Source: Penicillus capitatus
Lineage: Eukaryota > Plantae > Chlorophyta
Direction: 5' to 3'
DNA: 64,000 nt
Assembly: GCA_965649825.1 (NCBI GenBank)
Contig: OZ287697.1
Coordinates: 1,722,351 to 1,786,350, forward strand
Shown: positions 11,478 to 58,284 of the stretch, one piece after another
Layout of the letters: each line of letters opens with the position of its first letter
How positions within the stretch are numbered: position 1 is the first letter of the stretch
The notes under the pieces: model-generated
What the model was told of the DNA's origin: nothing
The model's input: only the letters and a program-made list of their open reading frames with translations
Database searches by the model: none
Position numbers and translations under genes: made by a program

Positions 11478-11511
11478 TACGCGTTGTGTCGTTTCGTTTC
11501 GGGAATCAGGA

Positions 11512-27883: not shown

Positions 27884-27989
27884 ATTCTCCGTCGGCCTGA
27901 ACGTGTAGCCAAGGGAAGCCTGATTCTCCGTCGGCCTGAACGTGTAGCCAAGGGAAGCCTGATTCTCCGTCGGCCTGAACGTGTAGCCA
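27884..27989. repeat. 39-bp tandem repeat, 2.7 copies
   Basis: ATTCTCCGTCGGCCTGAACGTGTAGCCAAGGGAAGCCTG starts at 27884, 27923 and 27962 (last copy partial). Confidence 0.95.
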
Positions 27990-30075
27990 GGGTTTGCCTC
28001 AAGCGATTCCAAACGAGGACGATACGCGCTTCCCTGTGAACCATACGGTGTCAGCGCGTCCGTCGAGAGGTTTTGCTCTAGTACGTCGGTTGCTCACCTG
28101 GTGGACGAAGACGAGCAGCAGGGCCGTCAGGAACGCCGTTTTCGCAGAAAACATTCTAAAAGATCTCCGCAAAACCCGTCTACCAAACTCAGAAAGGGGA
28201 CACGGACGAAGTTAAAACAGGCAAATGGTCGGTCGGAGAATGGAGAAATGGGCTTTTATGCAGAGTCCATTCGCATGTGCGCGGGACCATTGCTGACCAC
28301 GCGTTGAGGGGACCGTTGTAAGAATCTGTTTTGGTACGAGCAGTCCATCCAACGCAGACACGTCTTGTTATCCTAATGACAACAAGTGATAAAAAATGTC
28401 AGTCTGTGAGCCACTTCCGTGGCCACCGTCTGCGTCGTCCAAACGTAACAGCTGCGTTCCGACGGTGGAGGTCCTGTCACTCCTCGTCAGGTACGTGCGA
28501 GCATTAGCAGAACGGCGTGTCCGCCACGAGGTCAAGAGATAGATCACTTTTGGCGGCGGCGGATTTACCGACTTGGCCACAGGCATCTGAACGTGACTGT
28601 CGTCTCTCGGCGTTCTCGGCCTGAAATGCCCTACAGCATACAAGATCCTAGCAACGCACTTACCCCCTCGAGACGCGAAGGCGTTTGAAGTCTTACTCAC
28701 GACGGCAGAACACAGTTCAGCGCGATAGAACGCGAAGAGCAGTTTGCACTCGACGAAAGAACGTCGCCGAGACTCGTGCCGACCGACTCTGCAAACGGCG
28801 TCTTTACGGGAGGCATGTGCATGGAGACGCTCGCCTTCAAGGTCTCTGTGGACGCGTTCAAATCTGCGACCATGGATGAGACATCAACATTGAACCCTTC
28901 GCCATCGACGTTATCTCTTAAGCGTTAGCAGCCGACAAAGGACTCCGGTCGTCTCTTCGGTCCTGCTGTCGTGTCATCAGCGCGAGAGTCGACTGACGGC
29001 GGCGACGCGTGGACATGTGCCAATCTTCCGAGGACAGATCAAGAGAGAATTACGTCGAAGAGATCGAACTTCGTGGACGTCGCAGTCAGCCTATCGCCGT
29101 GAAACACTGATCGCGCAGGAAACGTGCGCAAAGAAGCACTTCGACACATTTGCAGAGGATGGTTCTTTTGAGATGCTCTTTATGCCAAGAGCGAAGTGCT
29201 GGTCTGTCTCTTCTGCGGATCCACGAAGAACAGCGCTATCAAGCTGCCAACGACAAATGAGTTTCAGCCTGTCACCGAACGGGCATCGCTTCGTCCAGAG
29301 ACAAGCACCACAACTGGACTTCGGATCGAGAGAAAGAGATGCGCTCTCCAGTCGCATCACACAGGAATCTCCCGCCGAAGACCCTCCAGCAAAAAGCATC
29401 TCTCGACACACAGCGACGGGGCTACACACAAAGGCGAGTGGCTCCGTATCAGACACAATCTGCCACGACCGAGATGGACGCGCCCCAGTCGTCTTGGACT
29501 GTCAGGTTCTTGTCACTGCCGTAGGATGAACGGACAAGAGCTCCACGGCTGAACAGATCTGCTGTCAGAGACGCTCCTGGTCTTCTATCTCTTAGCTTCT
29601 GTTCTCCGCCTTCGTGCCGACTGGCCTTTATCATCTCTACAGTCAGCTTCTGTCGCTCCGGCCAAGGCCACTGTCGTATCTCGACATGCCAGAGACACAT
29701 GGATTGCTTCACAGGGTGCGTCGAAAGCGAACGCAGCGAGAGGCGCGTCTTTGCGTGTCCTGTCTTCTCTCCTTCCGTTGATGCTTCCGCTAGATAATGG
29801 AAAGATGACAGCGAAATGAACTGCTCCACTGCAAGTCTTTCGCATCCACTGTAAAGCCAGACCACAATACCTCGCGTTACGAATTGGGCCTTCAACCGCA
29901 GGCATTTCTCGTGTGCCTTCGGCACGGACCCCTATCGTCGACGAGCACACGTTCGTTTCTGCAGCGACGTAATTTTACGATTTGCCGAACGGACACACCT
30001 CAACGACGCACGCTTCTGAGAACGACGACTTCGCTTTCTGCATCCGACGTCCGGTTCCCCGTCACCCAATCCGAG

Positions 30076-33000
30076 ATGCAGACGTCCTCGGTCTGGCCGC
30101 TTCTCGTCATCTTCCTCGCCATGCATTCATTCGCGTTTGGCCAAGGTACGAGGAGCACGAAGCCGGCAGACGGCTCCCTTCTGAGACCGTCTGTTGCAGA
30201 TCTCTGCGACTCCTTCGTGGAGAACAACGCGCTGATCGTCACCGCCAGGATCGAACGAGAGATAAACGCACTGAAGACGTCTTTTCAGGCGCTCGTGGAC
30301 TGCCTTCATCCGGGAGGAACGATCCGATTCAAGACGCGGAGCTTTTCGCCGAGCAAAACCATTCGCATCGAAAAAAGCATCACCGTGTCGACCGTCGCCG
30401 AAGAGAAGATCGCCATTGCGTGCAACGGAAGGCCGGTTTTCGACATCAGGTCGAATCTGTTCCGGCGCCGACTGAGCTGACGCAGTGATGCGCGCACAGG
30501 AATGCCTCGGTCGAGATCTCTAACATCCTTATCGGCGAATGCAGCTTGAGCGACAGCGCCGTCGCTCCGCTGATCGTCGGACCGGATTCGGTGGTCACGC
30601 TGAGATCCGTTGCCTTCCTGCGCAATGCGAACGCCGACGGCGCCAGCTGCATTTTGGCTATGGCCGGATCCGGCATCGCCATAGAAGACTCGGAGTTTCG
30701 AGAAAACAGAGGTTTCCTGGGACCGGCGATTCTGGACGATGTCCGTCGTCTGACGGTCTCTGCGTCGACCTTCGCCGAGAACAGGGCTTACGGTTTTGGA
30801 GAGGGAGGCGGCGTCTTTCGCATCCACGTACGCACGGTGCATTCCTAACACGCACCGTCGACTCTCTGTCTGACTGCAGGGCGAGAATGTACCGACGGTC
30901 GTCGTCGTGAAGGACGAGAGTCGATTCGTCAAGAACGACGCCTTCCAAGGAGACGGCGGCGTCTTCTTCGCGTCCGGCGACAGCATCTCGCTCGCTGTCG
31001 AAAACAACACGCTCTTCAAGGGGAACGCCACCAAGCGTAGGGGCGGAGCCATCTTCATCTCGTCGGCGAGGAACTTGACCATCACGGATTCCTTCTTCGT
31101 GGAGAACCTGTCCAAGGGCACGGGAGGCGGAGCGATATTCGCCGAGGTGGATGGGCCGTCGGTATCCCGTTCGGCAGAGACGACTGACGCTCTCTTCTGC
31201 GCAGGATACGAGTGAGAGTGGTTTGGACGTCGCGATATCCAATTCGCTCTTTGCAAGGAACCGTGCCAGCGGGTACCTCGCCGCTGGCGGCGGAATCCGC
31301 CTCCAGGGACGCGACGTTCGCTGCTCTTTGCGCGAATCGGTCGCGTTCTCACACAACGTCGCAGACCTCGACGGCGGAGGCATGTACCTTCTGGATCAAG
31401 CCTCTTGCGACATCGAGAGCGCAACGTTCGTCGGAAACGAGGCCTTGAACGGAGGCGGTGCCGCCATCTACGTTCTGGTACGCTGACGTGGCGGCGCCTC
31501 CTTCCTCACCCTTTGCTCGCGCTGTCTCAGTCGCTGCAGCAAGCCCGTGGCCGTGTGTTGGAAGTCGTCGTCGCGCAGACGACCTTTCTCTTCAACAGCG
31601 GCCTGTACAGCGATCGCGGCGGCGGGTGCATCGGCGTGACGGGCCTCGGATCGAAGATGACGATCCGGGATTGCACGTTCCGAAGCAACGACGGGGGAAG
31701 AGGCAGAGGCGGCGCCATCTACGCGTTTCACGGACCGGTGATCGAGATCGTGCATTCGCACTTCGAGCGCAACAAGGCGGAAAGAGGCGGCGCCCTGTAC
31801 GGCGAGGTAGAGGACGCACGAACGTCGGTCACTCCTTCGTCTACAATCGTGTGTCTCAGAGTGACGCCTCATTCGACATCCGAGACTCGACGTTTGTGGA
31901 GAATTCGGCTTTCGAAGGAGGGGCCGTTTACGCATGGGGCGACGTTGACATCGATGTGGGGCGTTGTGCATTCGAAAGAAACAGGGCACTGAGGGAGGGC
32001 GGCGCACTGAAGCTGCGCAATTTCGGATCGGGCGGGTCAGAGCTGGCCCGCTTTCGAATGAACGGCAGCGCGCTGGTGGAAAACGGAGCTGGCTCCAATC
32101 TGTTCGAAGACCGTCTCCTCGGCAAGAAGACACAGGGAGGAGGCGTCCTTGCCGAAGGCAGTGGACTGGTGCTCGAGTTCGTGGACGGCGCGTTCAGACG
32201 CAACGTCGCGTCGAACGGAGGCGCACTGAGCATTCGCGCCGTCGGCGACTGCATCATCGACCAGGGCAACGAGTGAGAATCCATCGGGCGTCTTGCGGGC
32301 GCGACTGGGGTTTGTGCAGATTCGAGGACAACAAGGCCACCTTCGGCGGGGCGGTTTTTCTGGTCGTTGACGAACAGATCGATCTCGTCAGACGGCGAAA
32401 CTACTTGATTGCAAGAACCACCTTTCGGAACAACAACGCAGACTACGAGGGCGGAGCCCTGCATGTCTCGAGCACCAAGACGGAGTCCAATTTGGTGTCG
32501 CAGAACGCATTCGTATTCCTCTTGACGGTCGAGGAGAGCGCGTTCAGGGAGAACACGTGAGATTCGCCGCACTTGTCCGGCACGGATTCGCGATGACGTG
32601 CCTTTTCGCGCAGAGCACGGCGTGGCGGCGGTGCCGTATCGATCGTCGGGTCGGCTGCCAGGATCTACCGAAGCGCCTTCGAGTCGAACCGTGCCGCGAT
32701 CGATTCGACGGACGTAGAAGCGACAGTGCTCGGCTTTGGAGGTGCCATGAGTCTTCAAACCGGATCCTCCGTCGAATGCACCGACGTGCAGTTTCGATCG
32801 AACTCGGCAGACGTCGGAGGGGCCGTCTTCGTCCGAGATGGTTCTTTCGAAGGGACGGGCGTCGAATTCGTCGACAACGCCGTGCTCGACGGCGGCGTCG
32901 GCGGCGCTGCGGCGGTCGAAGTGTCCAAGGGGAAGAGGATACCCGTCCTCAACAGCGGCGACTACGTGCTCAACATCGCCTTCCAATGCGACGTATGCCA

Positions 33001-35901
33001 TTTCCTGAGAAACTCTGGATCGCTTGCAGGAGGTGCATCTCCTGGCGTCCGCCTCCGCGAGCTGACGACCGTATCTCCAGGTGCCGTCCATGTGCACGAC
33101 ATGGATCCCGGAGGAACGTTTGCCGAAGACAACGAGCTGAGGATCGATGGCTGCGTGGAGGGGACGAGGGGCACGTCCGGCGACCGAGACAACGCGCTGA
33201 CCTGTCCGTCCTACTTCCGGTTCGTGGAATCGGTCGACGCGCGTTCCGTTCGATTCAGGAACACCGCCTTCGCCGAAAACGAAGCCAGAGCCGGAGGAGC
33301 CATCTTCACCAACAACCTTTCGATGATCAGCATCATGCCAGACGTGCGAGCGGTGGTAGACAAGTCCGTCGCCCTCGGATTCGTTCTGCAGGAGAACGAG
33401 GCGCATCTGGAGAAGAGCAACGTCACCTTCCTCGACAACAGCGTCGTCGACGGGGGATACGGCGAACGCGTGGCGTCCACACCCGTCACGGCATTGCTCA
33501 CGGATCTGGACGACGACAGCGGCGGACGTCCGGGGATCGCTTTGACGAAGAGCGACTTTCTCAGCGGCGCTCGGCTTCGATTCGGTGTCGAGTTCGAGGA
33601 CGGCCTGGACGCGTCCGTTACCTTTGCCGATCGTCTGACGGCGCACATCAGCTGCGACGAAGATCGATTGGACGAGCAAGCGGCGGACTGTGCGCTTCTG
33701 GAGATTTCGGGACAGGAGGCGGCCGAAGTGAGCGAGAAGGGCATTGCGAACTTCACGGCTGTCCGGCTGAGAGGCCTAGAGAGCCAGACATACGCGCTGC
33801 GTGTGGAGTACCGTTCGGCATCTGAGCTTCAAACGCTGAACACCGAACCGTCGCGCGTTCGAGTGACGATGCGACCCTGTCGGATCGGAGAGAGAACCGT
33901 CAGCGGCGAAGGAGAACTGCTCGAGTGTCAGGAGTGCAGCAGCTCGACGTACAACCTCAGTCCCAGAGACGCCGAGTGCCAGCCGTGTCCCGAGAACGGC
34001 AACTGCGAGTCCAGAGTGATCGTTCCGCACAGCGGATACTGGCAGGACTCGCCCTGCTCCGTGTCGATCGCCAAGTGCCTGACGTCTCACGCGTGCAAGT
34101 TCGGAGAACGCGTTCGAAAGCTGCGGAGCATGACGGACGACCTCTCGAGCTGCGATATCTCAGAGGCGGAGATAGAGGCGTACCAGAGAGCCCAGTGTGC
34201 ACAGGTGCGTTATGCTTTCTGCGAATGGAGGCCTGTGAGGTGTCTGTTTTGCGATTCCAGGGTCACACGGGGCCGCTCTGCGGAGCGTGCGAGAGCGGAT
34301 TCGGCAGTTCGTTGTCGTCCAGGTGCAAAGAGTGTCCGTCCGACATCGGCAACGTGGCTGTCATCTGCTTGTCGGTTGTGACGCTGCTGGGCTTGACCGC
34401 CATCACGATCCGAGGGACGCTGGGCGTCGCGAGGGGCAGGAGCTCGGGAGGCTTCAACCAGAGCGCAAGTCGAGCGTCCGTTCAACCGTCCCAGTCTTTC
34501 TCGCCGAGCGCCGTGCAAACGGGGCGGGCACAGGCGGTCAACATCGCAGGACAGCGAGACAGCGCAGACACCGAGGAAGCTGGAGGGTTTCCTGCCACCG
34601 ATGCAACGCTAACGCAATGGAAGGTCGTCGAGATGTTCAAGGTATGGCGCTCTGCGTGTTCTTTCGTAAAGGGCCAGTCGTTGGCGCAGATGACGCTGAA
34701 CCACATTCAGATGACGGTCCTGATCGCGACTCTGGACGTCGGCTGGGTCGTCCCGTTCCTCGTCATGGCAGAGATCGCAGGTCCGCACCCCTCCCGCTCG
34801 TCTGCGCGACTAACTCGAAGTCGGATGCTGCCGTGTTCAGAGTTCCTGGGAAGCCTTGCGATCGAGAGCATCCGCCGTTCCGTGGTCTGCCTGAGCGGAG
34901 AGAGCCAGTCGTTGCATGCGACGGCGTGGGCGTCGATCGTGAGCGTCTGCATCGTTCCGGCTTCTGTCTTCCTCCTGCTCGCGCTGCTGTGGACCACAAA
35001 CGTCGTCTGCCGTTTCATCGAAAGGCCGGTCCATTATCTAGCCAAGAGAGCGCTCCTGTCCATCATGGTCCTCTGGTACATCACTTCCGTCGCCGTGATC
35101 AAGACGACACTCGGCACCGTCCTCTGCGTCAGCGCCCACAACGTCCTGGACGCGACAGACGGAGAGAAAGAGATGAGCTACTGGGCGGTGGACACCAGTC
35201 TAAAGTGCTTCGAAGGGGATCATCAGACGCTGGCCGTCCTCATCCTGTCGTTCGTCGGCATCGTCTACGGCGGGCTGCTGATCGCCTTCGTCGCCATCCT
35301 TGGGTCCGCGGAAGAGCGGCTGAACGACGCAGACCACTGGATCTACCAGACCATGGGATTCCTCTACCGCAGCTACCGGCACGGGTGGCGTCGCTACTGG
35401 GAGGTTGCGATTGTCGCAAGGAAGGCAGGAGTCGCCTTTCTCGTGTTCTGTGCGCATCGCTTCGACAGCGTGCTGCCTATCATCGGCTCTGCTGTCTTCC
35501 TGACGCTTGCCCTGGGTGTGCAGATGGTGGCGATGCCCTACAGGCAGAGATCCGATGTGCTGAACAAGATCGAATTATCCTCGCTGTTTGCCTCCCTTCT
35601 GACGTTGCTTCTCGCAACCATGTTGAAGAGTGGGGATTCCGCCGAGGGCCGGAGTGGTTGGACCCTCTCTGCTCTATGTGGTCTGCTGAACATCGGCACT
35701 TTGATCGTGTTTCTGTCGTTTCTTATGCACTATTTTGTGGATCACTTGAGGGTTGTGATGCGCGAACGGGGAACTCGGGTGAATGTTGAAGGTGTCGGAG
35801 ATCTTCGGGTCTTGAAAATCTGGGCGTGGCACGAAGCTCAGCGCCTTGCTTGCTTGTCAGGTCTGTTCGGTCCGGAGAGCACTACCCCTTCGCTGTCCTG
35901 A
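30076..35901 (+). CDS. Pmp-like beta-helix / Cys-rich / multi-TM protein (divergent paralog), many exons
   Basis: Signal peptide MQTSSVWPLLVIFLAMHSFAFGQ. GGA/FxxN repeats occur across ORFs 30546..33200, with CQPCPENGNC, GHTGPLCGAC and a TM domain in 33925..35901. Introns are about 50 nt, several at positions conserved with the other copies. Confidence 0.85.
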
Positions 35902-35920
35902 TTTTATTTTTCCTTGAAAT

Positions 35921-36200
35921 GTGTGGCAAAACGAATGTTGGTTGTTTCTGTGGAACGTTGTCGTCCATGTTACTTGTCTCCTGACGGACGACTCGGAAAT
36001 GGTGTGTAAGGAAAGAGGCAGGTTGTGTCTATCCTTCTTAAAGAGTGACTTGGCGATGAGCACAATAGCACAAATCTCACTCTTTGGAGGCAATGGGACG
36101 TGATGGTCATCAACCGACAACCACAAGAGAGAAGGCCGTCAAGCACTAACAATTCAGTGGACTCGATATTTGACAAATTGACAGAATCATCGATGGAGAC
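35921..36200. repeat. 3'-flank of the 30076..35901 gene, duplicated at 56411..~56700
   Basis: GTGTGGCAAAACG...GTAAGGAAAGAGGCAGGTTGTGTCTATC...GAGTGACTTGGCGATGAGCACAATAGCACAAATCTCACTCTTTG is shared by both sites. The end coordinate is approximate. Confidence 0.85.
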
Positions 36201-36413
36201 CAAGAGAAGGACTGGACGAATTCAAGATCCACGCTTCTTGCGGTGCTAGCTGTAGCCGTCTGAGATCCTTCGCCTGGGAAGGAACACGCTTCGGCGGAAT
36301 TTGAAGCAGCTCGTTCCGCAACGGCAACTCTTTCAATTAGTCATCTGCACGAGCGCGTTGAGCACATACCTCGACGATTGGACAGCGAGTAAAGAGAGAG
36401 GCACGTCAGCTTG

Positions 36414-46519: not shown

Positions 46520-47365
46520 TAAGACAACGCTTATCGTTCTGTCTTCCTGACTTTGTCCACATTTCACAACAGTATTCCTCAGAGCTGTCGCATAATACGT
46601 AAAGACGACCCTGAACGTCGAAAACATTGATTGTGGTTCACAGAGTGGATCTTTCATGTGATCCGTGTGTATCTTTTTTTTGCTATTCGAGAACCTGAAC
46701 CGAGTTCTCAATTACACTGGGAGACGACCGGTGAGGACGATCCCAGCCAACACTCCTAGTGCTTAAGTGCATGTATTGTATCTTAAAACGTCACGGTCGA
46801 AACAGAAATCGCAGTCGGACTGTTAAACATCGCCGTTTGGTGTTCCATTGTTTTCCCGGCAAATGCGATTTCTTTTTTAGTCTATGTATATGTGTCTGCT
46901 TGTGTTTGAGTCATTCTCAATTGTCTCTTTAGATCTGTCAACGCGTCTTCTTTTCTAAGGCGTGTTAGCCGTTACATCCTGTCGATAATGTGTGACGTGT
47001 AATGGAAGGCGGAAAAGCTCACGTGATGCGAAAGAAATCTTTGCGACCTTGACGTGTGGATTGATTAGACTCTACGGCATTCTCTCAAAGAGATGTCTGC
47101 GAGGTTAGGGAGATTGAACATCTCTTCGGCGAATGCGGTCGTCTCGTGTAGACAATGATGAGTGACTGTCCTGTGAAAGAGGTTCGGGTCGATGCGCGCA
47201 TTCAGACACAGCTTCAAAGAAAAGAGTGGTGCCGTATTTGATTAATAGACAGTTGGTAGATGGATTTGACAAAGCCTGGTTGCAGAAACCCTTCGACGAA
47301 TCATGCTTCATTGTTTGGACAGCAACCGGCAAACAACACCCAACAACGCCGTCCACTTCAGACGG

Positions 47366-47598
47366 TGTTGTGAGAATTCGCTCGGAAAGTTAAGCAGTGC
47401 TCGTTCGCGGTTTGCTATTCGTATGCAGAAACGTATAGAACACAGTTACAAATCTGTGATCGTGTGCGTCCGTTTGTCAGTGAACAGCTGTCCACCTTCG
47501 TGCAGCTAGCTGCCACGGGACGCGTTGATGTGACATTTGACGCGTATAAATCCGAACGATTAATTGTTACAACAATCTTTATAACCAGTGTGTGTGGG
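47366..47598. mobile_element. LTR-like fragment flanking the Gypsy element
   Basis: It starts with TGT exactly where homology to 27495 ends. It shares AGTTACAAATCT and CACGGGACG with the solo LTR at 54063/55992. Confidence 0.5.
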
Positions 47599-47777
47599 TG
47601 TCAGACTAAATGAGCACAATGAAGGCATCCCGACGGCATAAGAGAAGTCGCATCAGAACCTACTACATGTCACATCAAAACCCTAGCACTATAAAAGGGG
47701 GACAATTGCGTTGTTTACGTCATTCTGTTTTAAAAGTCTTCCGCTAATGCGTGTGTTTGTTCACCTACGACGCGACA
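47599..47777 (+). repeat. 5' LTR of the Gypsy element
   Basis: TGTCAGAC...GCGACA, with TATAAAA at 47690. I counted 7 substitutions versus the 3' LTR (about 96% identity). Confidence 0.95.
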
Positions 47778-47789
47778 TGGTTTCGGAGC
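47778..47789 (+). promoter_or_regulatory. Primer-binding site TGGTTTCGGAGC (initiator-Met-tRNA-like)
   Basis: It abuts the 5' LTR and differs at two positions from the plant tRNA-iMet PBS TGGTATCAGAGC. Confidence 0.85.
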
Positions 47790-47800
47790 ATCGATCCAAG

Positions 47801-48154
47801 ATGCGACGTTGTTTCTATGTTCTGGCAGCCCTACTTCTATTCGGGCTCGGTGGAGTTGGAGGTCAGGCGGAGGCTAAATCCACCCTGGACCGGAAGTTGA
47901 AGATGGACGACGAGATCAACTTTCAAGATCTCCTGGAGGCGATTAAAAACAATCAAGACGCAACGGAGAACTTACAAGAGGTTGTTGACAATATTGTGGA
48001 GATCGTATCCGTTCTGGCGGCAGACGCTGCGGCCGCTAAGGCGGCAAAGGAGGAAGCCCAGGGTTTCGATGTCGAGCTGGAATTCACATCGGAAACGTGG
48101 CATTGCGTCAAGGAATGTCTCCGTCTTTTTTTCGAGGATGCTATGAGCTCATAG
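47801..48154 (+). CDS. Retroelement ORF1: signal-peptide-like N-terminus plus acidic coiled-coil-like segment
   Basis: MRRCFYVLAALLLFGLGGVGGQA-EAKS. It overlaps ORF2, which lies in the -1 frame, across T TTT TTC (48127..48133). Confidence 0.7.
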   Translation: MRRCFYVLAALLLFGLGGVGGQAEAKSTLDRKLKMDDEINFQDLLEAIKNNQDATENLQEVVDNIVEIVSVLAADAAAAKAAKEEAQGFDVELEFTSETWHCVKECLRLFFEDAMSS

Positions 48155-49488
48155 TCGGCATCGTGGGTCGATTGGGCATAGCGTGGAATCAAGGAGACTT
48201 TGTTACAAAGTCTCCGTTGACCTTCATGATATACAACACGGTATGCACCATACCGGGTGCCGTTCGAAATGCTGTGTGGTTCGTGGTCCAAGTATGGACT
48301 GCGTACAACGCCCTACGTAGCTGGTTGAGGGGAAGCCCTAAACTTGAGAAGGGCGAAAAGATGAACGACTCGATTGAAAGTTACGAGGAACTGACGCAAG
48401 TCCGTCGGTATCGAGAAGAAAGACTCCAAGACTTCGTCGACAGACTTGTCACGAAGTGGAAGACCCTCACACCCAAGATCTCAGACGCAAGATTCCTGAG
48501 AGTGTTGAAACAACATTTTCCCCGAGAATTCCTGCAAGGCCTGCACGATCTCAATCTTGACGAAGTGAAGGTGAATACAGTGATCGAAAAGTGGAACAAT
48601 TTCTGCAAGTGGACAGCCCCTCCGGCGAACAGAGCAGCTCCCCGGGCAACGCAGCCCACGGCAGCGAGAGTGCAACCAGTCAGAAGGGATGCGAGACAAA
48701 ACCCGCAGCAGGGACAGCAGCAGGGACAGCAGCAGGGACGACAAGACGAGAGGAGGTGCTACAGATGCAATCAGCCAGGGCACTTGTTTGCCCAGTGCCC
48801 TTTGAATGCCCCGGGTCGCTATAACCGAAGGGCAGTTCAGGAAGTTAATGTACCAGAAGGCTACGAGTTGACACCTGCCCCATACAACGCCCAGTGGGAG
48901 CAAGAGGGACGATGCGATCGAGAGCCACCGTCGCCGTGTGCACAGTGCGGCGAGCGCCATTGGACTAGCCATTGTCCGAGTCGTCAGCCAAGTTCGAGCT
49001 CCCATGCAGAAGCAGAGGCACCGAGACAGGTCTTTCACGACGAAGGGTCGGACACCGAAGAGAGCACTCGTCGCACCGAGAGCGTGAGCGTTTTCTCGAT
49101 TGCAAAGACAGGGACTCCCTTTATTGCGAAGAAGATCCACATCACGTTCCAGTTCACGAACAGGGACAAGAAGGTTCAGCCGGTGAAGGCGTTGGTTGAC
49201 ACCGGTAGCTGCGCAAATGTCGTCTCATTCTCGGCGCTTCAGAAGTTGGGATACGCTAAGACCGACCTCATACATGACGCAAAAGTACCTTCAGCATTAG
49301 CCGGGTTCGCAGGCGAGGACGCCAGAACACTTGGAGGCATCTTCCTCAAGGTGCGCCTGGGAAGCGTCACCCGCGATATACCGTTCATCGTGATGAACGA
49401 CGTCCTGACGCACTGCATCATTGGTATGCCGGCGATTGACGCATTTGACCTCCACATCCGTGGACGGGCACGTGCAGTGTCTTTTTAG
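48097..49488 (+). CDS. gag: Retroelement ORF2: hydrophobic segment, Gag (two zinc knuckles) and aspartic protease
   Basis: Motifs are YEELTQVRRYREERLQDFVDRL (gag-like), CYRCNQPGHLFAQC, CAQCGERHWTSHC and ALVDTGS...IIGMPAI (protease). Confidence 0.9.
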   Translation: MALRQGMSPSFFRGCYELIVGIVGRLGIAWNQGDFVTKSPLTFMIYNTVCTIPGAVRNAVWFVVQVWTAYNALRSWLRGSPKLEKGEKMNDSIESYEELTQVRRYREERLQDFVDRLVTKWKTLTPKISDARFLRVLKQHFPREFLQGLHDLNLDEVKVNTVIEKWNNFCKWTAPPANRAAPRATQPTAARVQPVRRDARQNPQQGQQQGQQQGRQDERRCYRCNQPGHLFAQCPLNAPGRYNRRAVQEVNVPEGYELTPAPYNAQWEQEGRCDREPPSPCAQCGERHWTSHCPSRQPSSSSHAEAEAPRQVFHDEGSDTEESTRRTESVSVFSIAKTGTPFIAKKIHITFQFTNRDKKVQPVKALVDTGSCANVVSFSALQKLGYAKTDLIHDAKVPSALAGFAGEDARTLGGIFLKVRLGSVTRDIPFIVMNDVLTHCIIGMPAIDAFDLHIRGRARAVSF

Positions 49489-52330
49489 AACATCCTGCCG
49501 AGGAGGGCGACTCTGCAGGATTCCGCGTGGTACAGTTGTGGGAGACGGAGAAGGGAATCCGCCCTTTTTGTAGACAGAATCTCATCAAGTTCCCGTTAGG
49601 CAAGACCAAGTTTGTCCCACCGCGTGAGTGGGTCAGTTACAATTTTCCTTGGGCCGTTCGTGGGGATCTGTCGTCTGTGTCTTTTCATTGCTCTCTGAAC
49701 AGATGTCCTTTTCTTGCGTTTGTGACCGTCTCTGACTCGGGACAGTTTCGTCTGAACATCTACAACACATCGAACGAGGCTCAAGTTCTGCTAGGGAGCA
49801 CCTTTGCATGCAACTTTTGGTATTCCGGTCGGATGCGGTGCAAGTTTTTACCCCTCTGGAATAAAGGGGATGGCGAGGATCGAGCAGTCAAGGCCGTGTT
49901 TTCAGTCAGTGGTGATATGTTTTCCGAGTTCCCCGAAGTTTTTGATGATGGGACCTACTGCGTGACGCCTGCGATGAAGGCTTTGCGCGTTGACATCCGA
50001 GAGTGCCGTCTGAAAGGTGATCCGACGTTCATGGGCGAGCGTACCTGTCCGAAGATCGACCACCTAGTCCCCGAGCAGCGCATTCGAGAGGAGATAGATT
50101 CCTTTTTGCGAAAAGGCTTCATCGAGCGTGTGAAGTCGAGTGACGAGGGTTTCCTCACGCCTATCTTCTTCTTGCCGAAGAAGGATGGAAAGAAGATAAG
50201 GACACTCAATAACTACCGCAAGCTTAACGCGATGTGTGACTTTTCGTCGGCGACATTCGTCGACGCCATGAGGACGATGCGGTCCATACCGAGGATCTGG
50301 AAACACTTCAGCAAGCTGGATCTGGCGAACGCTTTTTTCAGTGTGGGGTTGAGCCGCGAAACGTCGAAACTCTTCGGGTTCAACATCTTCAACGAGACGT
50401 ACGTGTGGAGGGTGATCCCCCAAGGTTTCGGGTGGAGCCCTATTTGGTTCGTCGAACGAGTGAAGGACATTCTGCACAAGCTCCCCGTCGTTGTATACGC
50501 TGACGACGTGCTCGTTGGAGCCGATTCGGAGGCTGAGCACAACCGAATTCTACGGTTGGTGCTGCAGAGGTTCGAGAGGTTCGGTCTGCGTTTGAACAAG
50601 GACAAAGTTATCATCAATGTTCCCGAAGTTGACTTTCTCGGCTTCCGCGTCAAAGGAGGCGGTTTCAACCTGAAGTGTTACATGGAAGAGAAAGCGACCA
50701 AGACACCGAAGCTTGAACACTACAAGCAACTAGAGAAGACGATCGGTGCCCTCAACTTTTGCCGGGCGCATGTCCCGAATCTGAGCAAGAAGATGGATAT
50801 GCTTCACTCGGCCAAACAGAGAGCCCTGAGGTGTCCAGCCGACTGCGATGAAGCATGGTGGAAGGCGATCAACGAAAAGGTCAGAGAGATATGGGTAGAC
50901 GTAGTGCGAAGCGGCGTCGAACTCAGTCTCGGCGGGTCATTCGACTCGTTTGAGCTCTATGTCGACTGGAGCGGCCCGCATCGCGGATACGTCCTATTCG
51001 GCAAGTGCGATGCCGCGAGGGAAAAGCGCATCGTTGCCGTGGGATCTGCGAAGGACCCGATCCCCCACCAGAGTTCCTTTCTAGGCGAGATTCGGGCAGT
51101 GAAGTGGGCTCTTCAACAGACGACACAGTTTCGAGGAGCCATCAAGACGAAGACATACGTCGACAACAAGGTGGTGGTCGATGGCCTGAACAAGGGGATT
51201 GCGGCGTTCTGCGATGACCGAAGGTGTGCTCGAGTGTTTGCCTTTATATGTGAGAACGAAGGAAACGTGATGTTCTCCTATTTACCTGGAAACCTGAACC
51301 AGATAGCCGACCAGCTTTCCCGATTAGACTCGGGTGGACTTACGCAACAGCCCTTAGACAAGGCGATCATGGCGATTGACCGCCCCGCGGAACAGGAGAT
51401 CGAACGCAGGATACGTTCCGCCCATTTCGGACACTGGGGATACCTGACGACGCTCCAGAACCTGCTCCTCGAGTCGGAGAGGTGGCCAAACATGGAGCGG
51501 GACGTACGCAACTTCGTGTCGAGCTGTCCGAACTGCGCCTTCAACGGCGAAGAGCAAAGGAGGGATGTCCCGAGCACCGAAATATCTCGCAGAATCGGCG
51601 AGAGAGTGTCCATGGATCACTGTGGGCCATTTTTCGACGGATCGCATATCCTCGTAATCGTGGACGACGCGACAAAATGGGTAGAGGCTCTGAGAACCCC
51701 AGGAACTGGAGCCGTGCACGCCATGAGAGCGTTGGATCAATGGCAAGCAAAGCACGGAAGGATCGAGCTGCTTTGCACGGATAATGCAAGCGCTTGGAAC
51801 TCAGACACCTTCCGAAGATGGGCAGCAAGCCGACGCATCGACACTAGGAGAAGTCCGAGTTATCACCACCAGGCCAACGGATTGGCAGAGCGCACCATCA
51901 AGACGCTGTGCGAGCGAATCAGGCGCTTCATGAATGGGTCGACGAGGGCGTGGCCCAAAGCGATACAAGGAGCCGTAGACGCCATCAACACATCGTGGAG
52001 TTCAGTGACTAAGACCACGCCGCAGTCTCTCATGCTAGGCATTGATCGCAACGGCGCATTGCTGGATGACGAAACAAGCCGAAAAGCTTGGGAAGATGCG
52101 TGGAGAAGCGCTCAGCTCGCCAAGACGTACAAGCACGAGCGATTCAAGTGGAAACACCCGCGGCTGTCGAAGCCACTGCGTGTAGGCAATCGGGTGCTGA
52201 TGAAGAATTACCACCGGTCGAATCACCCGCTCGGAAAGCTGGGCCCGAAGTGGATCGGTCCCTTTATGATCGAAGAGCAGAGATCGGAATCGACCTGGAT
52301 CGTGCGAGAGGGACGAGGCTTACCGCCTGT
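49449..52330 (+). CDS. pol: Retroelement pol (RT, RNase H, integrase), interrupted at 52330; last 13 codons at 55998..56037
   Basis: RT motifs NNYRKLN, KLDLANAF, PQGFGWSP and YADD; RNase H-like LYVDWSG...GEIRAV; integrase HFGHWG...CPNC, MDHCG, TDNASAW, NGLAERTI; GPY/F motif KWIGPF. The frame is open from 49449, -1 relative to ORF2. Confidence 0.95.
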
Positions 52331-54057
52331 TGTCGCGCGGAGGCGCCGAACGAAACGATAACAAACAGCGGAAGTCTTACAGTGTTCGAAGCAAGGTCTA
52401 CAAAGACTCAGATTGTCCATTAAATACTTGCGCGATGACGCGACTTGACAAGGCAGGTGAATCACCCTAGCCTCAGAACCAGAGAAAATGGCCTTGGGTG
52501 ATTCAACCAAGACCCCCCAGGATATGGCCTCCTCAAAAACGAGGCAGTGTCATATCGCTCGGCGACACCACGCTTCCCGCCAAACTCCGAAAAACTGCAA
52601 GCAAGCCCCCACGAAAACAACAGAAGGAAATCAGTCTATGCCCGAGGTGAATCGTCGCAGCGCCGAGAAAATGGTCCATCCCGAAGATGATGATGCTTCT
52701 GTGTTTGGTTCCCCCTCTCTCTGCTGCGCATCCGATATCGTCGGATCCACTGACTCGACCGCATTAATCCGCGCTTGCGGACAGTCCTTGGCCAGATGCC
52801 CCTTGCATCGGCACACATAACATATCCGACCGCGCTTGATGGCACCTCCGTCATCATCTGCCGCGTCGGTTGCTCTCGCCCGTCGTCGGCGCGGGAACCG
52901 CCCAATGTCGTGCAAAACGCGCTTCATCTGATGCAACGTCTTCACGGTTCTCCGTCCTTCTGCCGGTCTTGTCGTCATCAACTCAGCCGTCCTTTCGCCG
53001 TTCGTCCGTACGGTTTCCTGCAGAGTCTTCACCTCGGCGGCCAAAGACTGTAGACATGGCACCAAATCAGGTGCCGAAATAAACTTTTTCTTCGCCTCTG
53101 TGAAGGCGGCATCAGTCTCTCTAAGCTTCTCATGGAGAGAGGAGGCTTCCACGCGTGCCTCGTTTGCATTTCTCTGTGCCTCAACGATACCTCGTTCTGC
53201 CTCGGAAAGCTCTTGTTGAAGCTTTTGTTTCTGCTCCTGCAGATTCTCATTTCCGACCATCAAACACTCCATCTCGTCGCTGGCTTCACTAGCTTCCCAT
53301 TCGGCCTCACTGGCTCGTCGTTGTGCACATTGCAGCTCCCGTTTCAATCGTTCATTCTCCTTGTGCAAACGTCCCGTCGTCACTTGCAAATCCCGTCTTT
53401 CTTGTAGTCGCGGACAAACGTATCTGATGAAGTCGACCAGTTCGCCCGCGTCAAACAAAAAACTCTCAGGGCGCTGGCCGCCCACCACGTTAACCCGACC
53501 CCACGTCCACACCTTATGACAACGAAGCGCACCAGGGTACAGACCCTCCTCCTCCTCCAATTCTCTGAGCAAACTCGGTCCGTAGACAGTGTTGCCATAA
53601 TACCCGGTGAAACCTTCCCCTCCTTGACCTTGCTCTGCTCTTCTTTCTCGTCGCCCTCGACTCATCCTTGCTCCTGACTCTTGAAATTCCTAGGTATGTC
53701 TAGAAAATGTCTAGACAGGACTCGACTTCCCCGAAGTAAGCGCTTTAGTGCACACAGCACGCGCGCAACGTCACTGAGACGGAGTTCAAACTGAGGAGCG
53801 TTATCTCAGCTCCGAAACCACGTCGCGCGGAGGCGCCGAACGAAACGATAACAAACAGCGGAAGTCTTACAGTGTTCGAAGCAAGGTCTACAAAGACTCA
53901 GATTGTCCATTAAATACTTGCGCGATGACGCGACTTGACAAGGCAGGTGAATCACCCTAGCCTCAGAACCAGAGAAAATGGCCTTGGGTGATTCAACCAA
54001 GACCCCCCAGGATATGGCCTCCTCAAAAACGAGGCAGTGTCACATCGCTCGGCGACA
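52331..54057 (-). mobile_element. Non-autonomous LTR element A (1727 bp), antisense inside pol
   Basis: The 237-bp LTRs 52331..52567 and 53821..54057 show 2 differences. The PBS is at 53820..53809 and a PPT-like GGCGGGAAGCGTGG precedes the 3' LTR. The TSD CCTGT is at 52326-30 and 54058-62. Confidence 0.92.
52631..53665 (-). CDS. Element A single ORF: unknown N-domain, coiled coil, CCHC zinc knuckle
   Basis: A 344-aa intact ORF with a heptad-rich ERLKRELQ...EARVEASSL segment, CYVCRCKGHLAKDC and a C-terminal FTSGID. Confidence 0.85.
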   Translation of the reverse strand: MSRGRRERRAEQGQGGEGFTGYYGNTVYGPSLLRELEEEEGLYPGALRCHKVWTWGRVNVVGGQRPESFLFDAGELVDFIRYVCPRLQERRDLQVTTGRLHKENERLKRELQCAQRRASEAEWEASEASDEMECLMVGNENLQEQKQKLQQELSEAERGIVEAQRNANEARVEASSLHEKLRETDAAFTEAKKKFISAPDLVPCLQSLAAEVKTLQETVRTNGERTAELMTTRPAEGRRTVKTLHQMKRVLHDIGRFPRRRRARATDAADDDGGAIKRGRICYVCRCKGHLAKDCPQARINAVESVDPTISDAQQREGEPNTEASSSSGWTIFSALRRFTSGID

Positions 54058-54176
54058 CCTGTTGTTAAACGTTGCTTCAGAAGACGCAGTAAAGTTCTTA
54101 AAGAAAGTTCGTGCGCAGAAGTTACAAATCTAATCGAATCTCTTTTTACTTATACGCATGATGTGATGTTACCACC

Positions 54177-55921
54177 TGTCGGCAAGATGGCGTTTTGCTG
54201 ATGTGACTGTCTTGTTTTCGATGGGTCCACATTCAGGGGGGGGCTTGGTTGAATCACCTAAGGCCATTTTCTTTGGTTCTGAGGCTAGGGTGATTCACCT
54301 GCCTAGGAACGTCGCGTCACCGCGCACATACATAAGGACACATTCTGAACACTCAGGACCTTGCTCCAAACAGTTTGTAAGTCTTCCGCTGTGTTAATCT
54401 TTCGTCCGGCCCGATCGCCGACAGTGGTTTCGGAGCGTGTATACGTTCCTCAGTTGGGGCTCCGTCTTTGTGACGTTGCGTGGCTGCTCTGTGCATTGCG
54501 CTCTCCTACGTGGAGAACGAGTCCTGTCTAGGCGACTAGACGCACCAAGGAAAGCCCCAGGGACGGCAGTTGAGGGATGAGTCAAGCACGAATAGAATGG
54601 ACAAGGGAGCGAGGTCGAGAGGAGTGTTATATCTACGAGACATACAAGAACGTCGCGAGCATGCTCGCGCATATGGGTCAAGACGATGGCCTCAGCCCTA
54701 GCCTTGCGGGAACACCGGTGCTGGCAGGCTCGGTGCTGGCGGGCATCTGCAATGAGCAGCCTCATTTGCAGTACGTGGTGGCGGACGGGGACATAGCTGA
54801 TTTCCTTAGTTATGTTTGTCCGCGACTGCAAGAAAGACGAGACCTGCTAGGGACGACGGGACGGTTGCGCGAGGAACGAGAGCGGCTGCGCCAGCGGGTG
54901 GCGACCGTCGAGGCCGAAAAGGAACAGCTGCAACAGCAGCTGCGGCGTGAACAGCGAAGGATATCCGAGGCAACGGCAGAAAACGATCGGCTGTCAGGCG
55001 ACAACACGAAGCTGCGACATGACATTTCCAAGGCAGAACGAGGCATCGTCGAGGCACGACGAGACGCAAACGAGGCACGCGTAGCAGCCTCCTCTCTACA
55101 GAAGAAGCTCGAAGAGACAGAGACCGCCTTCGGAGAGGCAAAGAAACTTTGGTGTCTAGTCTTCGGTCGTTGTCCACAGAGGTGAAGGCACTGCATGAGG
55201 AAGTCCGGACAAGTGGCGAAAAGACAATCGAAGCGGTGGTGAGGAGACCACCAGAGGAACGACGGAATGGGAAGACTCTACGCCAGATGAGGAGAGTGCT
55301 GCATGACATCGGACGGTATCCGCGGCGACATCGAAGAGGGAGGGCAGCCGGCGCAGCTGACGATGGCGGGGAAGCCACGAAGCGCGGCCGAGTCTGCTAC
55401 AGCTGCCGGTGCAAGGGGCACCTGGCGAAGAACTGTCCGCGGGCGCGGACAGACACGGTTGCGTCAGCGGAGCCGACGGGATCGGATACGCAGCCGAGAT
55501 CCGACATGGCGACAGAGTTGAATACAGCATCAGCGTACTCAGGGCTCAAGATCTTGTCCTTTTTCCGGCGGAATTTCACCTCGGGCATCGACTGAACATT
55601 AGTAATTGTGTTTGGGGGGCCTTGCATCTGTTTTCGGAGTTGGCGGGAAGCGTGGTGTCGGCAAGATTGAGGTGCTGATGTGACTGTCTTGTGTGGGAGG
55701 GGGCCACCTTGCTCTGGGACACTCGGGGTCGTGTCATTTGAGGTTTTGGGCCGAGAAGAGGCCTTTTTTATGGTCCTGGGGCAGTACTGAGTCACCTGCC
55801 TAGACATGTCGCATCACAACGAGGGTATTTAATGGGACAATCCGAACCATGTTTACCTTGCTCCAAACAGTTTGTAAAGTCTTCCGCTGTGTTAATCTTT
55901 CGTCCGGCCCGATCGCCGACA
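54177..55921 (+). mobile_element. Non-autonomous LTR element B (1745 bp), same family as A
   Basis: LTRs are 54177..54423 and 55656..55921 (TGTCGGCAAG...CGCCGACA), the PBS is at 54425..54436, and the TSD CCACC is at 54172-76 and 55922-26. Confidence 0.9.
54577..55595 (+). pseudogene. Element B ORF, homolog of the element A ORF, broken by a frameshifting deletion near 55147
   Basis: ORFs 54577..55185 and 55149..55595 together align to the A protein (YVCPRLQERRDL, CYSCRCKGHLAKNC, FTSGID). About 19 nt present in A are missing. Confidence 0.8.
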
Positions 55922-55997
55922 CCACCGTGCTGAGCACGGGACGATGTTCAGTAATAATCTTCATTACTTGCCTTCATCATCCCATCTCGACACCTGT

Positions 55998-56037
55998 TCT
56001 GGTTCATTCCTCCCAAATAAAGCCCTATCTAACATAA
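55998..56037 (+). CDS. pol: Displaced 3' end of the host integrase
   Basis: Removing 52331..55997 joins CCT GT to T CTG GTT CAT... in frame and restores ...REGRGLPPVLVHSSQIKPYLT-stop. Confidence 0.88.
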
Positions 56038-56142
56038 AATCACCTGGCTGGAACGCTTTTATACTTTCCCTCAAGTCGTGCACATCGTCTCCATGTGGCC
56101 TCCTATCTCTTCGGAGTTTGCGCTCGGAAGGTGATGAGCCCA

Positions 56143-56321
56143 TGTCAGACTAAATGAGCACAATGAAGGTATCCCGACGGCATAAGGGAAGTCACATCAG
56201 AACCTACTACATGTCACATCAAAACCCTAGCACTATAAAAGGGTGACAATTGCGTTGTTTACGTCATTCCGTTTTAAAAATCTTCCGCTAATGCGTGTGT
56301 TTGTTCACCAACGACGCGACA
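56143..56321 (+). repeat. 3' LTR of the Gypsy element
   Basis: A 179-bp near-copy of 47599..47777. Confidence 0.95.
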
Positions 56322-56410
56322 GACCAGATGATCTTATCTGTTTTTAAGGGTCTGCCTCCGCATACGTTCGACCGATTCTCCTCCGCCGACGTGAGTGTTC
56401 GAGTGCGACA
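56322..56410. mobile_element. LTR-like terminal fragment
   Basis: It ends in GCGACA exactly where homology to 35921 begins. Confidence 0.45.
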
Positions 56411-57006
56411 GTGTGGCAAAACGGATATTGGTTGTTTCTGTGGGACGTTGTCGTCCGTATTACATGTCTCTTGACGGACGGCCTAGAAATGGCGTGTAAG
56501 GAAAGAGGCAGGTTGTGTCTATCATCCCTAAAGAGTGACTTGGCGATGAGCACAATAGCACAAATCTCACTCTTTGAAGGCAATGGTACGTGATGATCAT
56601 CAATCGTCAACCAGACAACAGACACGACCGTCAAGCGCTAACAATTCAGTAGACTCACTATTTGACAAACAGACATGATCGTTGATAGAGGCCAAGAGAG
56701 GGACTGTGTCGCGATGGACTTGCTTGCTTTGTTCTTACGGTTAATCTATTCCATTGCTTCGAAGGCTCTCACACATGGACATTTGCTGAATAGTATTCAT
56801 TCTTCGCTATTCGCCTGTTGCGTCGATCTGATTTTAAGATCTCTGAGACGAGGGATTATCCCTTCACCTAAAAGGCCAAGAACTCCGAAGTCGTGTCCGT
56901 AGCGAAATTCGGTTCCTGAAGCTGCGCCAGCAGAATAAGCTAGCTACGTTCGAGAACCGTCGAGTTTATCTTCTTCCGACAAATTGAAGTAATTGCATCC
57001 GTCAGG

Positions 57007-58284
57007 TTAGTCAGCGACGTCGAGGGAAAGGTAATCTGATTGCTTCCGTTTCTCAACAAGAAGCCAGGAAGATTGACTTCGCAGAGGCCATCGAGCTCTG
57101 TCAGCGTGCATGGTCCAGGTTGATGACTCGACGTCCGATCTCAGTGTTACATCAAGTCTCTTCAGTCCTGTCAAGGACAACAGCACACTGCGGAAGCCCT
57201 CGCACGCTTCAGCAGTCCCCAGATGCACACCGAGAGAATGCAGCCGAGAGTACGTTTCTGAATGGAAGAGCTGAAGATCGCCGCCGTCTGTCCCGTCGCC
57301 GAAGTAGTCCAGTCGCTCCAGCCGCGTCATTGAGGTCAGACCGGCGAGCCGCCGGGCAACGTCGAGATCTTCGGACGGAAAACTGGTTGAACAAGAGAGC
57401 TCGACGGCGTTTGGAAAAGCGGTCATTAAGTCAGAGACGTGTTCGGAAGACACCTGTCTAAGCTTGACGGGCAGAGACTTGCAAGTTGCGTCCCTTTGTC
57501 GACACACGCGGCGGTACTCTTGAATGCCATCGTCGAGAAGATAGCCGAGTACTTTATGAAGGTGTGAAGAACTTCCTCCGACACTTTCTCCCTGCACCTC
57601 TCTTTCGACGTCCTTGGCCTGGACGACGCGGATTTCCCCCTCGTCTTGACCGGGGGGCGGAGGAGGAGCATTGTCGCCGGAGTCGTTCCCGTGTTGGCTC
57701 AGCTCACAAGCGCGGCGGAAGTCTTGAAATTGGATGAGGATGGGCGATAGTTCGAAGGCCACACAGACAGCGTTTCAGCAAAGGGCGACTTGTTACAACT
57801 GAGAATAGACAGCGAATGTTTTGCAAGGTATAAACAGAATGTATGCGATTCACCGATGACAAAGGAACTTGATCGTCAAACGAAAGATGTCTTTATGTGT
57901 CGAAGCCTTGCTTAAATACTCAGACCCTGATGTGACGACAGGAAGAGTCGATGAACTTCAAGAGTGAGTTTGCAATAAGATTCTCAATTAGACTAGGGAA
58001 TTCAGTATGAACTTCTAGAAGTTTCCTAGGAACTTCTCAGGAACTCACTCCCAGTCATCACGACTTGTCTGCGACTCAGCCGTGATGGTTACTTTTGCAT
58101 AGCCAAAGACCCGACAAGTGCTAGGTGACAGAAATGTCACTATTATATGGACGTCCCATCACCTCTTCGTCAGAATTGCGCCATTCTTTCACAGAAGGAA
58201 CCAATCCTCGTCCAGCAAGAGGCCAATGCAATTCCAGTGACTGGACTGCGGTCGCCTTTCGCCGGAAACATCACGTTTTGCCAT
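57007..58284 (-). pseudogene. F-box-like/LRR pseudogene (unit 3 copy) split by a solo LTR
   Basis: The N-terminus MAKRDVSG...DEDWFL is at 58284..58194 and continues HKVLGYLLDDGIQEYRR at 57562..57007. Similarity is lost beyond about 57007. Confidence 0.85.
57563..58193. mobile_element. Solo LTR, 631 bp, unrelated to the nest LTRs
   Basis: TGTGAAGA...TCTTTCACA termini, with the 5-bp TSD GAAGG at 57558-62 and 58194-98. The empty site TGAAGGAAC is visible in the paralogs at about 18901 and 37457. Confidence 0.9.

Follow-up and report, generated by a model that had tools for sequence, protein, structure and literature searches.

A nest of LTR retrotransposons marks a probable recombinational deletion in a tandem array of membrane-protein genes

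Of the three copies in a tandem array of membrane-protein genes, the middle one, which carries nested LTR retrotransposons, has lost at least ~0.8 kb of sequence relative to its closest paralogue. The most probable history (to which we give a probability of roughly 0.58) is that LTR retrotransposons integrated at two sites in this copy and that unequal homologous recombination between them deleted the intervening DNA, most likely together with a B-type paralogue. The window, i.e. the whole stretch of 64,000 nucleotides that was analysed, is organised as R0-A1-L1-(block with B1)-R1-A2-L2-(nest)-R2-A3-L3-(start of block)-unique DNA, with unit 3 extending beyond the window end (Table 1).

Table 1. 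Features of the array and of the retrotransposon nest (positions in the window).
Feature	Position	Strand	Characteristics
L1, unit 1 left flank	27197..27495	+	homologous to unit 2 47069-47365 and to unit 3
Unit 1 block without counterpart in unit 2	27496..35920	+	8,425 bp; 27496-28318 also in unit 3
B1, B-type family gene	30076..35901	+	signal peptide, Chlam_PMP repeats, Cys-rich region, multi-helix C-terminal domain
R1, unit 1 right flank	35921..36214	+	homologous to unit 2 56411-56706
L2, unit 2 left flank	47069..47365	+	GACGG at its breakpoint end
O-left, 5' 233 bp of outer LTR	47366..47598	+	TGTTGTG start; TATAAA near 47545; homologous to a diverged O-like LTR in unit 3
G 5' LTR, 179 bp	47599..47777	+	TGTCAG...GCGACA; PBS TGGTTTCGGAGC at 47778
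G gag-protease ORF	48097..49488	+	CCHC knuckle, DTGS aspartyl protease motif
G pol ORF	49527..52330	+	RT with YADD, integrase zinc-binding and core domains; cut at 52330/52331 by E1
E1, non-autonomous LTR element	52331..54057	-	LTRs 99.6% identical; perfect TSD CCTGT
E2, non-autonomous LTR element	54176..55921	+	perfect TSD CCACC
G 3' tail	55927..56142	+	remaining open pol codons and polypurine stretch before 3' LTR
G 3' LTR	56143..56321	+	7/179 mismatches versus 5' LTR
O-right, 3' 89 bp of outer LTR	56322..56410	+	ends GTGCGACA; U5-like motif common to G and E LTRs
R2, unit 2 right flank	56411..56706	+	GTGTG at its breakpoint start
LTR-like insertion in unit 3, internal control	57563..58193	+	631 bp, TGT...ACA, perfect TSD GAAGG

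An earlier note on this DNA, made from the letters alone, had proposed that homology between units 1 and 2 ends at 27495/47365 and restarts at 35921/56411, and self-blastn together with base-level alignments proved this to be exact to the base. The left flanks are 87.3% identical and the right flanks 86.8% by self-blastn, and the sequence passes from CTTCAGACGG to TGTTGTGAG at 47365/47366 and from GTGCGACA to GTGTGGCAAAAC at 56410/56411. The breakpoints coincide with canonical LTR termini. The TGT start and ACA end seen there by the earlier note are real, but they belong to an outer LTR, O, and not to the Gypsy element. Similarly, the insert in unit 2, which had been described as only LTR DNA, is actually a full-length Ty3/Gypsy element (G, spanning 47599-56321) and two gag-only LTR elements (E1 and E2) nested in it, all inside a split 322-bp LTR that belongs to a different family. 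The claim that only the 3' flank of the gene is left in unit 2 stands, with homology restarting 20 bp past the B1 stop codon.

The loss of DNA from unit 2, also claimed earlier, is best seen from unit 3, which is its closest paralogue (96-99% identical over ~8 kb). Unit 3 follows unit 2 at 92% identity up to 47365 and, past the left break, aligns instead with the unit 1 block (27496-27827 at 90% and 27980-28318 at 78%). Since unit 3 thus continues for ~0.8 kb like the block in unit 1, unit 2 has lost sequence, which rules out simple insertion as the origin of the nest. The match between unit 3 and the block ends at the equivalent of 28318, so that the ~0.8 kb of host DNA past its left site complements the 8,425 bp between the flanks in unit 1 as a reference, while being uninformative on what lay further right. 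Base-level alignments show that the right site in unit 1 and the left site in unit 3 are both empty, hence both integrations occurred in unit 2. The same empty sites led us to reject the idea that the A2/A3 duplication arose by unequal crossover between elements belonging to separate units.

Judged on its sequence, O is a real LTR family. Its two parts display both termini, no internal region except G and homology to an LTR family, as is characteristic of solo LTRs, and they appear to add up to about one complete LTR when gauged against the diverged O-like LTR of unit 3. This sole relative found (266 bp, covering both parts) has ~73% identity, with 34 nt missing around the point at which G inserted. 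Its alignment with O-left scores 135, against 37±6 for shuffles (blastn E = 1.5e-14), and O-right has in common with the LTRs of G and E not only the U5 motif but also the GACA end. Searches of ~137 kb of the contig with blastn-short and nhmmer found no further copy besides that in unit 3, and the JGI metagenome collection yielded none. The possibility that O-left and O-right are parts of longer G LTRs or relatives of the E LTRs was discarded, since they do not align. O is flanked by GACGG and GTGTG, i.e. it has no TSD.

G is a Ty3/Gypsy LTR retrotransposon, as seen from its direct TG...CA LTRs, gag-pol order, PBS and polypurine tract (GGAAGGTGATGAG, upstream of 56143). Its Pfam domains come in the order zf-CCHC, Asp_protease_2, RVT_1, Integrase_H2C2 and rve; no model matched RNase H at E <= 0.001, and no tRNA primer matching the PBS was found in the loci searched, which contain no tRNA genes. 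The nearest pol proteins are 81, 77, 75, 58 and 45% identical (those at 81, 77, 58 and 45% in other assemblies), and the LTRs of these relatives do not align with those of G. Two features that the earlier note had reported, LTRs differing by ~4% (96.1% identity) and a missing TSD (GTGGG versus GACCA), were both found again, the latter marking a rearranged copy and being no argument against family membership. Its description of pol as intact holds for the RT-IN frame, which is open, but not for the 3' end, where E1 and E2 sever at least 110 further open codons. That the ORFs are open despite 3.9% LTR divergence (neutral-decay P = 0.03 as point estimate, 0.25 at the lower confidence limit) fits a chimeric G modestly well. 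At the 5' junction of G with O, ACCAG is shared and there are 10 additional bases, TGTGTGTGGG; these could have been a remnant of the polypurine tract, an idea that was abandoned because the sequences differ.

The two elements that interrupt the end of G pol each have a perfect 5-bp TSD, and so does the 631-bp LTR of unit 3 (whose site is empty in units 1 and 2), which shows that 5-bp TSDs are normal in this array. E1 encodes a 344-aa gag-like protein with coiled-coil and CCHC, and its PBS is identical to that of G; the 5' LTR of E2 is a mosaic, the middle of which matches E1-type LTRs. Canonical termini combined with unlike 5-mer flanks, as found for both O and G, are the signature of a recombinant element or solo LTR with deletion.

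What unit 1 holds at the corresponding place is indeed a gene, as had been claimed, and a member of the family, although calling it a receptor, like any such naming of genes A and B, is a guess. B1 starts with an ATG at 30076, followed by a signal-peptide-like N-terminus, and has an intact 3' half with two conserved short introns. Its 5' half (30076-32597) is split across at least three frames, unlike in its paralogues, which may reflect a pseudogene, extra introns or assembly indels from 13x coverage. The two short introns are the preferred reading since every paralogue in four loci interrupts the ORF at the same two places; for that reason, the in-frame TGA/TAA in A1-A3 were not taken as nonsense mutations or a variant code. 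The C-terminal domain of A and B genes has no Pfam match and no PDB relative by sequence, and its AlphaFold model, which shows 7-8 long helices, is too poor (pLDDT 56) for the domain to be named by its fold.

How the nest might have come about can be outlined as follows. After unit 2 had diverged from the other units, LTR retrotransposons would have integrated at two of its sites, (i) a GACGG target at the junction between L2 and the block (equivalent to 27495/27496) and (ii) a GTGTG target downstream of the B-type gene, 20 bp from its stop codon (equivalent to 35920/35921). Unequal homologous recombination between two copies in the same orientation would then have removed everything between them, roughly 8 kb. 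What stayed behind would be the equivalent of a single element, joined by its left end to the first site and by its right end to the second. Parsimony suggests that a B-type paralogue lay in the lost interval; no remnant of one was found in unit 2. This history retains from the earlier note the recombination between two insertions, which would account for the DNA loss and the missing TSDs, but with breakpoints at the ends of O and not of the Gypsy element. No undeleted allele, second haplotype or sister strain was found in the collections searched, the family proteins of the array being represented by one member on one contig each. The contig, ctg340394_13x_l (ERZ25074695), on which the nest occupies positions 36124-45168 (92534 minus the window position), comes from a 13x metagenome assembly, which was counted against the deletion explanation.

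The copies that recombined may have been either two O elements, generating a hybrid solo O LTR into which G would have inserted a single time, forming an odd junction, or else two copies of G, each within an O LTR. The former is at least as likely as the latter: since O-left and O-right make up about one LTR, recombination between G copies would require that G had entered two O LTRs at almost identical places. A weak point of recombination between O copies is that G is left without a clean TSD. If they were the partners, the TSDs of an undeleted allele would be GACGG and GTGTG, not GTGGG and GACCA. There is a slim chance of something more unusual, i.e. that G integrates at a fixed position, ~50 nt 3' of the TATA box in O-type LTR promoters, or that it was captured without integrase. 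In the first case, two independent G copies would have landed nearly alike in two O LTRs before recombining; in the second, the junction consisting of ACCAG and TGTGTGTGGG would record an integrase-independent, filler-bearing capture. If true, such a mode of targeting or insertion, in a protist that has been little studied, would be unusual for a Ty3/Gypsy lineage.

Among the alternatives to a two-site deletion, the one that survives best, unlikely as we consider it, is that unit 2 lacked a B gene from the outset. In the ancestral repeat, R-A-L-blockstart would have been joined directly to the next R, 28319-35920 with B1 would have been added to unit 1 later, and the nest would have removed only ~0.8 kb. 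This would be in line with the homology of unit 3 to the unit 1 block stopping at 28318, with no B remnant being found in unit 2 or 3, and with B1 sitting on a long branch and having a broken 5' half. However, it demands a base-level coincidence, namely that B1 was inserted exactly at a unit junction that is also the O terminus, and it sits uneasily with both the recurrence of a B-type then A-type pair in the neighbouring cluster (C0 then A0 there, B1 then A2 here) and array growth via flanking-repeat recombination, which copies intervening DNA.

It is improbable that a single aberrant integration, in which the ends of one O cDNA joined targets ~8 kb apart, deleted the interval in one step, with O later collapsing to a solo LTR into which G then inserted. 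Clean LTR termini without TSD at both junctions, and an O-left and O-right that equal one LTR, would be expected from such an event, but the missing TSD of G stays unexplained and, in comparison with recombination between elements, integrase-mediated LTR insertion rarely entails a large deletion at the target. An assembly artefact, whereby the assembler collapsed two element copies or mis-joined units 2 and 3, is slightly less probable still. Although the low coverage (13x) and the near-identity of these units could promote it, the protein collection contains no second G copy at >=90% identity, the O LTR of only ~0.3 kb is easily spanned by long reads, and the order and orientation of the flanks are as expected for the array. 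Moreover, collapsing two G copies requires the same O position for both, just as recombination between G copies does. Finally, a simple nested insertion with all host DNA kept, for which intact termini speak and nothing further, is refuted by units 1 and 3 running past the left break with sequence missing from unit 2, and by flanks that are not duplicated.

Deletion by recombination between retrotransposons is a known mechanism, so this locus is a further example rather than a new principle. Its appeal lies in what would be the trimming, by retrotransposons, of a surface-protein gene array in an uncultured, probably algal eukaryote, with the paralogous units serving as built-in empty-site controls. 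It also calls for caution during annotation, where the gene missing from the middle unit should be treated as a deletion, real or possibly created by the assembly, rather than as divergence of the region. Of greater interest may be the gene family itself, which is uncharacterised.

Several known systems offer instructive parallels. E1 and E2 resemble LARD/TRIM-like gag-only elements, which need an autonomous partner, in having LTRs, the PBS of G, a polypurine tract, 5-bp TSDs and a gag-like ORF only, whose homology to G gag is not clear outside the CCHC knuckle; they may depend on G. Integration-coupled deletions of target sites, known for L1 and for aberrant retroviral integration, are single-step events that share with our locus a TSD-less insertion replacing host sequence, but here both termini are canonical and the interval is large for that mechanism. 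Another parallel is offered by the deletions caused by Ty elements in yeast and by HERVs in humans (such as AZFa), where direct-repeat recombination between dispersed copies likewise removes intervening genes; parental and deleted alleles are both documented there, only the deleted one here. There is also a match with plants, in which unequal homologous recombination between elements gives rise to solo LTRs or complete TSD-less elements, with the interval deleted, a process described in Arabidopsis, rice and barley (PMC7251063, citing Devos 2002, Ma 2004, Shirasu 2000, and Vitte & Panaud 2003). As in these cases, intact TG...CA termini are here found with mismatched 5-bp flanks, the host DNA between the integration sites is lost and neighbouring elements have normal TSDs. 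Unlike them, our locus lies in a microbial eukaryote rather than a plant and is known from its deleted state, without the parental two-insertion state, and what survives is a split LTR enclosing a full element that is TSD-less as well.

Self-comparison of the window and of 9 kb fetched past its end (part of locus L004) outlines an array of three tandem units, U1 to U3, each with an A-type gene (A1 to A3), while B1, a B-type paralogue, lies between A1 and A2. The window corresponds to the reverse strand of contig ctg340394_13x_l (576,620 bp; ENA metagenome assembly ERZ25074695), where subtracting a window coordinate from 92534 gives the contig coordinate. Homology between U1 and U2 stops at 27495/47365 and resumes at 35921/56411, with base-level alignments reading ...CTTCAGACGG/TGTTGTGAG at the left junction and ...GTGCGACA/GTGTGGCAAAAC at the right one. 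The U1 interval between these breakpoints measures 8,425 bp and contains B1; its place in U2 is taken by a nest of retroelements. The observation is real, and both approaches return the breakpoint coordinates of an earlier note, which had ascribed the loss of a receptor paralogue from U2 to recombination between two Gypsy elements. Weak homology (~66%) of 17298-18400 to the inter-unit flanks R1/R2 extends the array upstream of A1, and these R regions differ mutually by several hundred-bp indels and carry minus-strand LRR-like ORFs. Host genes near the array (9867-14244 and L004 21076-22838) encode RCC1-repeat, DCD (development and cell death), F-box/LRR and RelA/SpoT (HD_4 + RelA_SpoT) proteins, a mix that suggests a photosynthetic or alga-like eukaryotic host. 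A dispersed ~150-bp repeat (83-87% identity; 2745-2894, 45828-45977 and L004 16363-16445), whose copy at the window start is inverted relative to those of U2/U3, could be a small transposon fragment. Tandem repeats occur in 14595-14970 and 27884-27989 (73-bp x 3.1, 80-bp x 2 and a perfect 39-bp x 2.7, the last inside the U1 block, in a part to which no U3 sequence aligns).

Coordinates of the array, its family genes and its retroelements
Feature	Position	Details
U1	~17.3-36.9 kb	
U2	36.9-57.0 kb	
U3	57.0 to ~69.3 kb	extended window coordinates, which continue past the window end
Family gene A1	20930-25146	
Family gene B1	30076-35901	ATG 30076, stop 35901
Family gene A2	39467-44005	
Family gene A3	60198-64000	within window
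Further family gene(s)	2506-8146	minus strand
ORF-break positions	A2 42299-42301, 42716-42718; A3 63033, 63450; A1 23860; B1 ~34204-34258	
O-left	47366-47598	233 bp; begins TGT, has TATAAA
O-right	56322-56410	89 bp; ends GCGACA
G LTRs	47599-47777 and 56143-56321	179 bp each; 7/179 positions differ
G gag-protease ORF	48097-49488	
G RT-integrase ORF	starts 49527	
E1	52331-54057	minus; LTRs 99.6% identical; TSD CCTGT
E2	54176-55921	plus; TSD CCACC
LTR-like insertion in U3	57563-58193	631 bp, TGT...ACA; perfect TSD GAAGG

The genes concerned belong to a large, uncharacterised family of three clades (A, B/C and D), which occurs in tandem and inverted clusters and has relatives in two or more further metagenome-assembled genomes. 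Its members have a signal peptide, Chlam_PMP repeats and a Cys-rich region; their C-terminal domain, for which 7-8 helices are predicted, has no match in Pfam or PDB. In-frame TGA/TAA codons or frame changes recur at two shared positions in all paralogues, other loci included. The best reading is a pair of conserved short introns, and at both of them the prokaryotic gene caller of this assembly cuts each family gene, giving three ORFs. The 3' half of B1 is intact and its 5' 2.5 kb is broken across at least three frames, in contrast to the single 944-codon exon of the A genes; B1 is not clearly functional.

The closest relative of U2 is U3: their identity is 96-99% over the A gene and 92% across the final 730 bp left of the breakpoint. 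Over 37457-45911 versus 58194-66642, the unit edges reach just 87.5% and 92%, values close to the divergence from U1, which suggests that A2 and A3 were later homogenised by gene conversion. U3 follows U2 exactly to 47365 and then matches U1 27496-27827 (90%) and 27980-28318 (78%). Two of the three units agree beyond the left breakpoint and U2 is therefore the derived state, the loss from it of at least ~0.8 kb being well supported by these alignments. A simple nested insertion with nothing lost, one of the two findings that the earlier note had named as fatal to its proposal, is refuted since U1 and U3 both continue past the left breakpoint.

What the lost interval held is a separate matter, and here the loss of host DNA claimed by the earlier note stands on the comparison of U3 with U2, while its lost receptor gene is a likely reconstruction. 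That U2 never carried a B gene is improbable: (i) R2, downstream of B1 in U1, is present in U2, which must therefore derive from a segment spanning the block, (ii) a later entry of B1 into U1 would need the exact site of an O terminus and (iii) a pair of B-type then A-type genes recurs (C0 followed by A0 in the inverted cluster next to the array, B1 followed by A2 in the array itself). On the other side, U2 and U3 hold no B-like remnant, U3 running past the block-start homology into unique DNA and then the RelA/SpoT gene, so that its evidence reaches no further than the start of the block. No undeleted allele was found, each of the array's family proteins being one member on one contig.

The nest itself is layered differently from what the earlier note described, in that its outermost element is not the Gypsy but a split LTR, O, inside which the Ty3/Gypsy element G (PBS TGGTTTCGGAGC) is inserted. 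The U5-like motif of O-right is common to the LTRs of G and of E1 and E2, two non-autonomous elements that share the PBS of G, encode only a coiled-coil + CCHC gag-like protein each and both sit in the 3' end of G pol. If these two insertions are passed over, pol would remain open for at least 110 further codons, to the 3' LTR, and so the earlier note's claim of an intact pol does not strictly hold; the ~4% difference between the G LTRs (3.9%) and the absence of a TSD were borne out. The LTRs of E2 (54176-54423 and 55656-55921) are mosaic: their ends agree (the last 45 nt are identical) and the middle of the 5' LTR resembles E1-type LTRs, not E2's other LTR, suggesting that the inverted E1 LTR ~120 bp off was the donor in a gene conversion.

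Flanks are mismatched for both G (GTGGG/GACCA) and O (GACGG/GTGTG). Perfect 5-bp TSDs flank E1, E2 and also the 631-bp LTR of U3, whose empty site is seen in U1 (18902-18906) and U2 (37457-37461); simple insertion in this array therefore duplicates 5 bp and removes nothing. Part of this U3 LTR resembles 13020-13186 of L005 (76%), beside a Gypsy relative in another assembly. ACCAG is found on both sides of G, with ten extra bases (TGTGTGTGGG) between it and the 5' LTR (chance ~3%, a hand estimate), and may be a displaced TSD.

Each nest junction is a clean LTR terminus, and the two fall at different host sites. The right site in U1 and the left site in U3 are empty, so that both integrations took place in U2 and a crossover between elements of different units is excluded. 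Two same-orientation copies in U2 would have undergone unequal homologous recombination, deleting the interval between them, a reading to which we give a probability of about 0.6. The mechanism is of the kind proposed in the earlier note, its layer is not: the breakpoints are termini of O rather than of G. Recombination between two O copies is a tentative choice, favoured because exchange between G copies would need two G hits at nearly the same position in two O copies. Exchange between G copies, somewhat less likely, is favoured by the lack of a clean TSD for G and by ORFs still open although its LTRs have diverged by 3.9%; if G had decayed neutrally in situ, this would have P = 0.03 (point estimate), or 0.25 taking the lower confidence limit. 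U3 carries a diverged O-like LTR (extended 66772-67036, minus strand; L004 16575-16839; local alignment score 135 vs 37±6 shuffled, blastn E = 1.5e-14), which shows that O-left and O-right would together make about one whole LTR. It sits in a U3-specific 566-bp segment (66768-67333) with no clear TSD seen, beside two short segments order-swapped relative to U2 (46297-46474, 46537-46639), and there the start of O-left, TGTTGTGAG, reads CGTCGCGAG, a CpG/TpG pattern. JGI scans gave no O copies, and the nearest G relatives examined are all from other assemblies.

An aberrant integration that deleted its target in one step is quite unlikely, and an assembly collapse, conceivable at 13x coverage, slightly less likely still. 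Recombination between elements would place the U2 deletion in a textbook class of events, that is, unequal homologous recombination, whose known products are solo LTRs and complete elements that lack TSDs (PMC7251063).
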